DNA of 63,881 bases, filler included, from Pelomyxa schiedti (taxonomy: Eukaryota > Protista > Evosea), in assembly GCA_020536535.1 (NCBI GenBank). It is 9 parts of 9 records of this genome, joined end to end, with 100 filler letters (N's around TTAATTAATTAA, not from the genome) between each part and the next. Parts side by side here need not be neighbours in the genome. Positions count along the whole stretch, not along the records: positions 62,738 to 63,881 come from JAHLWZ010002773.1; 8 more parts are not named here. One strand, 5' to 3'. A program made the translations under genes and the position numbers. The notes beneath the pieces are model-generated. The model had not been told where the DNA came from. It did no database searches and saw only the letters and a list, made by a program, of their open reading frames with translations. Position 1 is the stretch's first letter. Every line of letters starts with the position of its first letter. Positions 8,981 to 63,881 of the stretch are shown here, in pieces.

Positions 8981-11215
8981 TTAGACTATTATTGAATGTT
9001 TCACGGACATACTGGTGTTCACTGCCTGTGCAGTTGGTGATAACCCCTTGGTGGCTGAAACAGCGGCTTGCCAGCGCTCAGTTACAGTGTCAAATTCTGG
9101 CGGAACTAATGCGATTTTGTGGAACCCACAACCCATTGTATTCAGCTTGACTCCTTGCAATGTGAGTGTGTAGTCCTGGTTCACGTCAAAGTCGTCACCA
9201 AAAACAAGCAGAAATCTGGCAGTGGAGGGGGAACGGCTCACAAACTGGAAGTGATAGATTTTGTGTTCTGAAGTTGCAACAGGTTGTTACGAAACGGGTT
9301 ATAAGGAAGTTGAAAAATAATAATACCGGGGTGTCTTTGGCACTTTGAGAAATTCTTAATTACTTGATCAGCATCACCTGTGAGTGTGGTAAGTTGTTTG
9401 GTGGAAGGGTCAGAAGTACTGACAGTAAAAGAGGCCAATGTTCAAAATAGTCTTGTTCACTTCCACGGACCTTATAATGGTTTCAACTCCAACAATTCCA
9501 ATCGGGTTCACTATTGTTGGTTGGTTTGGGAGAAAAAGTAATCGAACAAACTTGAAAGACTGAGATACAAGAGAGAATGGTTGTGAGCAAGTGCGTGTGA
9601 TATGCTTAAACCGCCTGTTTCTCCAATGGAATTTCCTGTGCTGATTGTAAGGGCAAATGGATATAATATTTAAAAATGAACCACGGAGATTCAGGTGCAC
9701 AAGAGTTGAATTCAGCAACAGAGCCTCAGACAGTGCTGAGGACCCTTCGTTTCCCATTGTGTTATCTGAAGAAAAGGAAGTGGTTCATTTGAGAAGGGTC
9801 AAAGAGAAGTGAACACCTGCAAGATCAAGGTGCAACAGAGTATTGTTCTTTATCAGTGAACGAGCGACTATAGCACAACCAGAGTCACCCAGTGCGGTTC
9901 CTTGGTTTCGTCATCAATAAATTGAATAGAACAGGAAAGCAAGCATACGGTGAATGTTGAGATACAACAGTGACTTGTTTTCAGAAAGACAGCTTCCAAC
10001 GTCTGCTGCAGAGTTCCCGATATTGTTTCCTGGTTTACGGACCCAATAAGGATTTTCAGTGTGTATACCAAGGGGAAGTTCTAGTCTTACCGCCAATATC
10101 GAGATATAATATAGAGTGGTTTTCACACCGCAGGGCATTGAAAATATGTGAGCAATCATCGGATCCGAACTCGCAATCTGTATTGATATAGTGAAGTCAG
10201 ATTAAGGGGGAAAAAGTAAGTATCGGACACATGCCAGAAATCTCAAGATCTTGCAAGTATGTGTTTCTTTTCACAAGTTCAACGATGTGAACTGCTCCTT
10301 GTGATCCAATCTCATTGCCTGGTGGTTGTTTGGACGATTGGCAGACCAATATAATTCTCCACTATTATTGAGAAATGGAGAAGGGGAAAAGTACATGAGA
10401 GATTTAACACAAGGAGAGAGCAGTTCTCGGACAGAGTTTCACAAATCACTTGGGTCTCGGGTGCCCCAATGCTGGAGTCTTGAAAGAACGGAATGGTATT
10501 AGGGCACACTCACTTTGGATATTTGGTTGGCAACTTGGGAGCTCCAGAGAGATGATATTTGTTCGACACAAGAGTGGCCAGGTTGACAACCTCAGGTTAT
10601 TTCGAGATTTGATTCGGAGGAGAGAGGAATTGCAATGAAGATTGAAGGCCGCCATGAGAACAACCAAATCCTCGTCTGTCATTCCACGATCTGTATGGAA
10701 GGTCACCCAACATGAACGAAGAGAGTCACAACAGTCTATCACCACAAAGTTAAACTTTAACACACACCCAGTTCAAGGCCCAGCAAGCATTTGATTTCTG
10801 CCAGACGGTCTGCAATGCATGAAATGGAAGTTGCGCAGCCAGGGTTCCCTTCCCAGTATTGGGTGATGAAGTCAGCAGGGCTTCTCCCATCTGACACCAA
10901 AACAAAAAAACATACGACAGAGGTTCAGATAAAACGGGAGAGCCTTCGAATACTGTAAGACAGCCAAACATAAGTTTTCAGCATAGGTCTCAGAAAATCC
11001 CTCATCTTCCACATCACATTAGAATGTTCTTTAACGGAGAAAGGGAGGGAGGGGGAAAAAAAAAAGAAAAAGGAAAACATACCCAACATGACGTCACAGC
11101 TTCTAGGCACTGTACTCACGAGTGACCATCCCTCACCACACACACGTCCATAAATCCCATAATCACCGTTTTCGCCTGACCCACCACAGTCACCACCTTC
11201 GTTCGCTGAGGCCAT
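8981..11215 (-). CDS. RNI/NLRC3-type leucine-rich repeat protein; multi-exon
   Basis: Starts MASANEGGD. LRR exons include NTMGNEGSSALSEALLLNSTLVHLNL (9765-9682, 84 nt), NSIGETGGLSISHALAHNHSLLYLSL, NNIGNSAADVGSCLSENKSLLYLNI and SSIGAPETQVICETLSENCSLLVLNL. Confidence 0.7.
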
Positions 11216-62637: not shown

Positions 62638-62737
62638 NNNNNNNNNNNNNNNNNNNNNNNNNNNNNNNNNNNNNNNNNNNNTTAATTAATTAANNNNNNN
62701 NNNNNNNNNNNNNNNNNNNNNNNNNNNNNNNNNNNNN
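62638..62737. other. Artificial contig linker
   Basis: N-TTAATTAATTAA-N. Confidence 0.98.
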
Positions 62738-63881
62738 GGAAGGCACCATTTCTTCTGTTGGTTGTTGTTGGCGCCAGTGCTGATGAGGATGTGGATTGGG
62801 TGGTCAGTGGTTATCTCCAGAACACTACTGTCACCTGTCTTCACAACAACCATTGGAACAGCTTGCTTCACTGGGCACCTATGTGGTGGGAAGTCAGAAG
62901 AAATGGAAGTGGTGACTGGAATCATGTCAACGCACCTCCAAATGCACGTGACAGTGGCATTTGGCAAACTTGTTTGCGAAGACAAGTTGCTGATGGTGCT
63001 GGAAGGAGTGGATGTGGCCACTTTGTCACCAACTTTGAGTTCTTTCATTGGGCACTCTGTTCCATTTGACAGCAGTATCGTGGCATTTGGTCCAAAGCAA
63101 ACAGTGCCAGCATTGGAGCTGGACTGTGTGTGACTGAGGTTATTGCAAAAAAATGGAAGTGAGTGCCAAGCATACACGATGCACCCTTCTTGGATCTTGG
63201 TCATAGATCCCAAAAGGCTTTAAGGTTATTATCTTATCGCTTGTGTTGTACATCCTTATTGGATTCTTCCAGTGGAACCCCTTTGGGAAAAGAGCACCCC
63301 GATGCAATGCGGTTGTAAACAGTGGCTCAGTTTTTGTGAGGTTATACAAATGCCTGCAGGTTCTGGAAACTCGGATGAGACTCATTATATCAAGGTATTC
63401 CAGTATCGCTAAGAACACATTTAAGAATCCACAGTTACAAATTAAAGTAAAAGGTGTGTGGAGTGAGAGCGAAATAAAAAGGGATGAAGAAAAACTGAAA
63501 AAAACGCAAAACCAACCTATCCAAAGGGTTGATGGAAGGAGGACCTCATTTGGGTCAGTGACAGTTGTGACTTTGTGGGCCAGTTGTTGGCTGGAAGAAT
63601 AAGAAGGACAAAGTGAAGGTGAGTGAATACCTGTTTGACACTGTAGAAACCAAATGTGAGGGTGCTGTCGCTGGTGGCGTGGCTGGAGTTCCAGGAGTGG
63701 GTGTGGAGGGGTGGGTGTCTTTGTTGTTGAAAGAAAACCAACTCCAAAAACCTCCTCCCCAGCCGGTCTTCTTTGGTTTCTCAGCAATAGGAGAGGATGT
63801 AAGCACTCCAACTCTTGCAACTGTGTCAAATAACTCCTGAACACCAACTTGAAGCTTGGAACTTTTCGTGGTTTTTGAGTG
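62738..63881 (-). CDS. F-box protein fused to a Hint (Hedgehog/intein) domain; truncated at both ends
   Basis: Spliced F-box LLPSTLWI-AILEYLDIMSLIRVSRTCRHLYNLTK, then ...RRVHR-SSSNAGTV|CFGPNATILLSNGTECPMKELKVGDKVAT (Hint block A) and LEITTDHPIHI (block B TxxH). Confidence 0.8.

Follow-up and report, generated by a model that had tools for sequence, protein, structure and literature searches.

The window analysed here (63,881 nucleotides, filler included, made of parts of nine records of the Pelomyxa schiedti assembly) ends in a contig of 1144 nucleotides, 62738-63881, whose minus strand carries an internal fragment of a nuclear gene for a three-part protein: a Rho/Rac-like GTPase, an F-box and, after a spacer of about 55 residues, a Hint domain of the Vint type. 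The spliced frame is 295 codons long, lies in five exons separated by four short introns with GT-AG ends, and is open at both ends (frame analysis; Table 1). The fragment is a truncated, rather divergent member of a GTPase-F-box-Vint family of about 15 paralogs. An original prediction, made from the DNA alone, had read the locus as a two-part F-box-Hint fusion with a spacer of about 50 residues; the fusion stands and the two-part layout does not, since the F-box is preceded by a Rho/Rac-like GTPase of which exon 1 encodes the last helix. Pfam and database searches were run with open reading frames (ORFs) and exons singly, and the spliced 295-residue product was compared with the paralogs by alignment.

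F-box, spacer and Hint are encoded by one spliced mRNA. RNA contigs 100% identical to the piece (single-cell RNA library, run X4, same study) showed introns C and D as GT..AG joints, and the joint 63123/63176 linked the exon with the F-box end and spacer (...DPRRVHR) to the exon starting SSSNAGTV/CFGPN (slash at the scissile bond). The in-frame joining of the two domains by GT-AG introns, read earlier from the DNA, was thereby found on a single transcript, and the co-splicing of their exons was shown by these contigs. For intron D the joint was reported at 62874/62932; an alternative cut, four positions to the right, is an equally good fit and has GT..AG ends when read on the minus strand. This second intron, inside the Hint domain, was absent from the original prediction; it has no in-frame stop, and its retention would insert 19 residues (CVDMIP...PPHR) into the domain (compare the unspliced ORF 62686-63213). 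Introns A and B, which have no RNA coverage, are supported by matching introns in the paralog P0005 (Pelo_2224), whose exon structure was mapped in its 120-kb contig: 11 introns of 40-93 nucleotides, all GT-AG, the last four sharing their phases with the four of the fragment. Two intron positions are identical (IWL/GILGYLD in P0005 and LWI/AILEYLD in the fragment, within the F-box; CIW/KCPV and CIW/RCPV, slash at the intron), and each of the remaining two is placed, in a variable segment, no more than about 3 residues from its P0005 counterpart. GC content was 33% in intron B vs. 48% in the exons.

The spliced product aligned over residues 7-295 with the paralogs (32-38% identity, E about 1e-45), and the fusion is therefore not a product of chance. 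At least 13 deposited P. schiedti proteins show a Rho/Rac-like GTPase, a KKxGFFxWFS linker, an F-box, a disordered spacer and a Hint domain (Pelo_829, Pelo_11166, Pelo_2224, Pelo_6761, Pelo_6742, Pelo_4551, Pelo_7900, Pelo_8773, Pelo_4777, Pelo_6648, two named "Ras family" and one named "Rac GTPase"). The paralogs are 30-57% identical to each other, and their genes were found on contigs of up to 222 kb, beside ordinary eukaryotic genes.

The F-box scored above the Pfam cut-offs in the frame-1 ORF 63143-63880 (F-box-like PF12937, 27.0 bits, cut-off 24.3; F-box PF00646, 25.7 bits, cut-off 20.5) and did so in exon 3 alone as well. The paralog F-boxes scored 25-42 bits in Pfam, and at the sequence level the family profile matched FBXO3, Skp2 and FBXW7 entries of the PDB over their F-boxes. 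In an AlphaFold2 model of the paralog P0011 (Pelo_6761) the F-box region formed four short helices at 235-274; no F-box structure was among the matches in the Foldseek list for the F-box-Vint model of P0011, which was dominated by Hint matches. Immediately before the scissile Val, in columns ~97-112 of alignment A3 (63176-63200 and 63100-63123), the end of the spacer is usually Arg-rich, then Ser-rich, then acidic (for example RRRRSGSDDIV and SHRRSSSDDRTV; in the fragment RRVHRSSSNAGTV). This tail resembles sites of basophilic kinases or CK2, or a polybasic membrane tail.

For the Hint domain, the match of the piece to PF01079 (26.5 bits, cut-off 29.7) covered profile positions 5-42 only, since the contig breaks off before the domain is complete, and the Vint score in pieces of the fragment (PF14623, 14-15 bits, cut-off 27) was low because of the same truncation. 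In most paralogs Vint reached 27.6-54.1 bits (exceptions: P0033, 24.8; P0012, 25.1; P0006, 19; P0009, 26.7), and PF01079 scored 17-26.5 bits, below its cut-off, in the fragment and all paralogs. The first Cys and the TxxH motif named in the original prediction were present in the fragment (V/CFGPN and TTDH) and conserved in the paralogs wherever the gene models cover them. CFGPN aligned to CFTPE at residue 1 of Drosophila Hedgehog-C (6td6/1at0). Invariant in a six-sequence alignment (A1) were C-F-G-P, C-I-W-x-C, L-E-x-T-x-D-H-P, W-C-L-P, Y-N, C-C-x-L-G-M and P-G..W-G..W-L..F-P-x-V. These motifs recurred across the wider paralog set, block B being found in every paralog scanned, and Cys1, T-x-D-H and the C-terminal CC-x-LG were kept in nearly all paralog models (the P0022 model is without the Cys1 block). 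Up to its end at WCL the fragment keeps every residue that is invariant in A1. From these residues the Hint/Vint domain is probably catalytic.

The Hint fold was confidently predicted for the full-length paralog P0011. AlphaFold2, run with the paralog alignment, gave a per-residue confidence (pLDDT) of about 90 for the GTPase and for the Hint domain and about 75 for the helical F-box, with linker and spacer disordered. The model of P0011 residues 228-493 matched the crystal structure of a Tetrahymena thermophila Vint domain (8r2c; Foldseek E 2.4e-9, TM score 0.70), and a second structural aligner gave Z 18.9 to the same structure, with a root-mean-square deviation of 2.5 Å over 147/169 residues; for BIL2, Hedgehog-C and inteins Z was about 10-12. 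The Cys of VCFGP, Cys313 (residue 86 of the model), superimposed on intein residue 1 and on Hedgehog Cys258. The family profile matched 8r2c by sequence too (TP-HP, W..P..LG, Y.Y..VL and C.C.LG motifs). The domain is of the Vint type and not of the Hedgehog/Hog type: membership of the latter was rejected on PF01079 scores below cut-off, on Z (about 11 vs. 18.9 for Vint), and on the lack of a sterol/adduct-recognition region (motifs J, K and L) and of a signal peptide. From the earlier comparison with Hedgehog the Hint assignment is thus retained and the Hog type with its sterol-recognition region dropped, and the cholesterol analogy is weak because the domain is Vint-type. In the paralogs about 35 residues follow CC-x-LG and form part of the Vint match, with neither a C-extein nor a sterol-recognition region among them. 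Protein splicing by an intein was also rejected, there being nothing after the domain that could serve as C-extein.

Exon 1 matched the last G-domain helix and the conserved linker KKxGFFxWFS of the paralogs. The paralog GTPases scored 40-120 bits on PF00071, and the modelled fold was closest to Rac/Rho structures. Among the paralogs P0002-P0033 the P-loop GxxGVGK[ST] is kept in most, the switch II motif DxxGQ was found only in P0007, P0019 and P0023, and the [NT]KxD motif reads LKxD throughout. Full-length paralogs begin with the GTPase beta1 strand and P-loop, and by inspection no signal peptide was found in them (the 5' end of the fragment itself is missing); as the N-termini are formed by the P-loop and carry no signal peptide, the protein is expected to be cytosolic. 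No CAAX box was found: the G domain is followed by linker, F-box and Vint, and the C-terminal tails of the paralogs are not CAAX.

Table 1. Exons and introns of the GTPase-F-box-Vint gene fragment, in the direction of transcription.
Feature	Position	Strand	Evidence
Exon 1, open at contig end: last helix of Rho/Ras-like GTPase domain (VGVQELFDTVARVG), linker KKTGWGGGFWSWFSF, Pro/Thr-rich stretch	63631..63881	-	Aligns with end of PF00071 Ras domain and KKxGFFxWFS linker of paralogs; no RNA contig over exon 1
Intron A, 40 nt, GTATTC..TTCCAG, phase 2, inferred	63591..63630	-	Needed for frame; paralog P0005 has a phase-2 intron within ~3 residues
Exon 2: linker and first third of F-box (LLPSTLWI; F-box start near 63538)	63517..63590	-	Aligns to IPNDIWL of paralogs
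Intron B, 108 nt, GTTGGT..TTCTTAG, phase 1, inside F-box, inferred	63409..63516	-	Removal makes F-box continuous (LPSTLWI/AILEYLD); P0005 phase-1 intron at identical position
Exon 3: remaining F-box (to ~63314) and most of ~55-residue spacer, end DPRRVHR	63176..63408	-	Pfam F-box 26 bits, F-box-like 25 bits; RNA contig over 63176-63349
Intron C, 52 nt, GTATGC..CACAG, phase 0, RNA-confirmed	63124..63175	-	Joint 63123/63176 in RNA run X4 (CT..AC on + strand); same junction in GenBank protein P0001
Exon 4: spacer end, scissile Val/Cys (Cys codon 63097-63099), Hint block A (CFGPNATILLSNG...LKVGDKV), CIW	62936..63123	-	Pfam Hint 24.4, Vint 15.3, Hint_2 14.2 bits; aligns to Hedgehog-C residue 1
Intron D, 57 nt, GTGCGT..CATAG, phase 2, length multiple of three, RNA-confirmed	62879..62935	-	Joint in RNA run X4; P0005 phase-2 intron at identical position
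Exon 5, open at contig end: Hint strands and block B (LEITTDHP; TTDH 62800-62811), ends WCL	62738..62878	-	Aligns to LEITPDHP...WCLP of paralogs; RNA contigs over 62738-62874

In GenBank the locus is represented by P0001 (KAH3714213.1, "hypothetical protein Pelo_19279 [Pelomyxa schiedti]", 80 residues, 100% identical to the fragment). Since this model starts at an internal Met (MYNTSDK) and its end (...SSQTSAQ) differs from the RNA-supported splice, the F-box and block B are hidden in the public annotation. The piece is a short contig from the single-cell genome of this anaerobic archamoeba, and Logan contigs of runs X1 and X2 extend it by 73 nucleotides upstream and by 277-437 nucleotides downstream. 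Plus-strand ORFs were shadows of the minus-strand gene and had no family match, and Rfam found nothing on either strand of the piece. Over 63024-63103 (Hint block A) and 63835-63866 (last GTPase helix) other DNA contigs of the same sample match the piece at about 90%, diverging beyond these stretches. These short matches are paralog cross-matches, and such cross-matches are probably the reason why the assembly broke into a 1.1-kb contig here.

An initial homolog search with the unspliced 158-residue Hint ORF gave no matches, and the family surfaced only in an exhaustive phmmer search of the Hint ORF against 1.84 billion representative proteins, with 17 matches, of which P0001 was best and the next ones were all from P. 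schiedti. The matches from outside Pelomyxa were set aside as prokaryotic or viral multi-intein and pretoxin-HINT proteins of other architecture (P0008, P0013 and P0015 scanned). A six-member profile run against 5.8 billion proteins did not find the architecture outside P. schiedti, which leaves its absence unproven given word-index limits and doubt over whether the databases hold other archamoebal proteomes; the F-box-Vint part of P0011, searched alone to avoid swamping by Ras proteins, likewise matched P. schiedti only, within the same limits. The single metagenome match to the Hint ORF (locus L001, 10001-10195 of Ga0209168_10000356, 31% identity) was rejected as probably due to chance, because the spanning ORF (9232-10230) encodes a TPR-repeat protein on a prokaryote-like contig and the match is probably in another frame. 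A literature search found no description of an F-box joined to any Hint domain, the hits being papers that name both terms separately and Burglin (2008), and neither the P. schiedti genome paper (PMC8887013) nor the Mastigamoeba balamuthi genome paper mentions an F-box or a Hint/Vint domain. The impression that Hint has no known F-box partner thus held, in the literature searched and, outside P. schiedti, in the proteins searched. The sequences are public and have automatic Pfam matches, so that the newness lies in recognition and description.

Three further arrangements were seen among the paralogs. P0023 (KAH3763429.1, "Rac GTPase", 775 residues) reads GTPase-Kelch-F-box-Vint, with a six-bladed-looking Kelch propeller, and so reverses the usual F-box/Kelch order, the substrate-type domain standing upstream of the F-box. 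In P0007 (KAH3756351.1, 844 residues) GTPase, F-box and the N-terminal Vint half (to WCLP...VDVE) are followed by DUF4403 (122 bits) and not by the CC-x-LG half; either the gene model is chimeric, or the C-terminal half of the Hint domain has genuinely been swapped. In P0012 and P0016 (Pelo_8523 and Pelo_8522, neighbours on a contig of 146,757 nucleotides) the Vint cassette comes after an N-terminal region of ankyrin repeats or of unknown type, F-box and GTPase both being absent, and the cassette has on this account been shuffled among cargos in the P. schiedti genome.

Hint domains are single-turnover devices that cut or join proteins, as in Hedgehog cholesteroylation, inteins and the conjugation of ubiquitin-like domains in ciliates. 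The reading preferred here, held with moderate confidence, is that the Vint domain cleaves itself off at Val/Cys by hydrolysis and so releases a GTPase-F-box adaptor of an Skp1-Cullin-F-box (SCF) ligase. In this scheme the Vint domain would carry out an N-S acyl shift at the conserved Val/Cys, Cys1 being helped by the Thr and His of T-x-D-H, and the resulting thioester would be resolved by an external nucleophile, by default water; hydrolysis is the simplest outcome because there is neither a C-extein nor a sterol-recognition region. The freed GTPase-F-box protein would end in a flexible, often Arg-rich spacer and would dock on Skp1-Cullin through its F-box, with the upstream GTPase (and, in one paralog, the Kelch propeller) as a putative target-recognition or localisation module. 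The Vint domain would then act as a single-turnover maturation switch of an SCF adaptor.

Several observations weigh against such a scheme. The fragment ends at WCL, about 100 residues short of the domain end, and the C-terminal half is absent from this copy as sequenced; the fold is that of a paralog model, P0011 being only 32-38% identical to the fragment protein. Residue -1 is a beta-branched Val, vs. Gly in Hedgehog, and the literature search found no evidence of cleavage for any Vint domain or for the GTPase-F-box-Vint family. Docking of the protein on Skp1-cullin by the F-box is inferred from sequence only. DxxGQ is lost in several paralogs, and many members may be GTPase-dead or pseudo-GTPases by their motifs. 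The RNA support comes from one single-cell library at a depth of 3-4, with no coverage of exons 1-2.

Instead of going to water, the Vint thioester could be passed to a membrane lipid, as an anchor replacing CAAX prenylation, or to a lysine or hydroxyl of a target protein, as a covalent SCF tether. Such ligation of the F-box to a lipid or target, the outcome envisaged in the original prediction, is the less likely one, and a self-ligating adaptor is considered unlikely. Rho/Rac GTPases normally end in a polybasic stretch and a CAAX lipid anchor, and the family has no CAAX; in many members Arg residues cluster 8-12 positions ahead of the scissile Val (RRWRR, RRRR, HRR; RRVHR in the fragment), although this cluster is missing in some paralogs (P0011, P0014), and the basic/aromatic KKxGFFxWFS sits exactly at the place of the Rho tail. 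The C-terminal Vint segment PG..D..WG..V..WL..RPDFP.V is conserved, lies within the 8r2c match and could recognise an adduct. BIL2 of the Tetrahymena BUBL locus was the second-best structural match, and this domain reportedly conjugates a ubiquitin-like domain. Set against ligation are the missing sterol-recognition region, the Hog-type Hint model scoring below cut-off in every member, and the lack of a known acceptor for any Vint domain; the presence of a suitable sterol is also doubtful in an anaerobic amoeba. Transfer and hydrolysis are indistinguishable in the present data.

It is improbable that the Vint domain is non-catalytic and stays attached as a substrate-binding or regulatory domain, at the position that WD40, LRR or Kelch domains occupy in other F-box proteins. 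The order of F-box and C-terminal beta-rich domain does mimic classical F-box proteins, and the acyl shift may be slowed by the Val at -1. However, Cys1, T-x-D-H and the C-terminal CC are kept among paralogs only 30-57% identical, and a domain used solely for binding would be expected to lose them; one paralog already has its Kelch propeller upstream of the F-box, and in P0012, where there is no F-box, the cassette stands behind ankyrin repeats, in keeping with a portable processing module. That the copy at this locus is dead or fragmentary (a pseudogene or assembly fragment, non-functional here in a family where the fusion is real) is very unlikely: the contig has only 1144 nucleotides (Logan contigs 1494-1654), the copy is the most divergent family member (32-38% identity), the WNYPG...WKN..F.WDP pattern is partly lost from its spacer and GenBank annotates an 80-residue product only, but the 295-codon frame is open over five exons with all family motifs kept, the gene is transcribed and correctly spliced, and all four introns are retained with GT-AG ends.

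Vint domains occur widely among protists and fungi, but neither a function nor a reaction product is known for this branch. Here Vint follows a Rho-like GTPase and an F-box in an actively transcribed family of about 15 members, which, together with the U-box-VWA-Vint proteins, links Vint to E3 ligase components twice. Small soluble constructs are at hand, F-box-spacer-Vint being shorter than 290 residues and suited to cleavage, adduct and Skp1-binding assays. Should the thioester go to a lipid or protein, the first acceptor for a Vint domain would be in hand, and with it a new route to anchor a GTPase or aim an SCF/cullin ligase; should it only be hydrolysed, the family would clearly exemplify both a ubiquitin-ligase adaptor that carries a self-cleaving pro-domain and the fast shuffling of domains in Archamoebae. 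It suggests a so far unexplored maturation route for such adaptors.

Among known systems the closest are the VWA-Vwaint-Vint proteins, by which Vint proteins were defined, for which intracellular processing was proposed and of which four carry a U-box (Burglin, 2008; PMC2362128); in these U-box-VWA-Vint proteins the tie of Vint to E3 ligases has its precedent. They share the Hint subtype with the Pelomyxa family (best structural match, profile-level sequence match), several AlphaFold DB matches to the P0011 model are named U-box or VWFA proteins, and both groups are intracellular, have no signal peptide and carry a C-terminal Hint without C-extein. They differ in cargo, which in Pelomyxa is a Rho-like GTPase with an F-box (in Pfam never VWA or Vwaint, once each Kelch and ankyrin), and in distribution, the Pelomyxa family being a lineage-specific expansion in a single archamoeba. 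By sequence and fold the family belongs to the Vint branch, and it fails the VWA-Vwaint architectural definition.

With Hedgehog/Hog (PF01079; 1at0, 6tyy) are shared the Hint fold, the N-terminal Cys after the scissile bond and the TxxH of block B. The conserved Cys in the last strands stands in CC-x-LG in the Pelomyxa family vs. SCYA in Hedgehog, and the position of the cholesterol-activating Hedgehog Asp, judged by eye, lies within the CIWxC motif. GmGIN1 of Glomus mosseae, an AIG1-like GTPase with a Hog domain and no signal peptide (PMC2362128), is alike in placing a GTPase N-terminal to an autoprocessing domain of the Hint superfamily, probably in the cytosol; it differs in its AIG1/IAN GTPase (Rho/Rac-like in the family), in its Hog domain with motifs J-L (Vint in the family) and in having no F-box. 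The ciliate BUBL proteins (ubiquitin-like domain and BIL Hint; 6tmm, 6y75) are likewise protist fusions of Hint to a component of the ubiquitin system, but are of the BIL subtype, and their cargo is a ubiquitin-like modifier and not an E3 adaptor motif. Canonical F-box proteins (Skp2, FBXW7, FBXO3, F-box/Kelch) share with the fragment an F-box above the Pfam cut-offs, whereas in Pelomyxa the F-box would be central or C-terminal in the mature fragment, preceded by GTPase and Kelch as putative recognition domains and followed by Hint.

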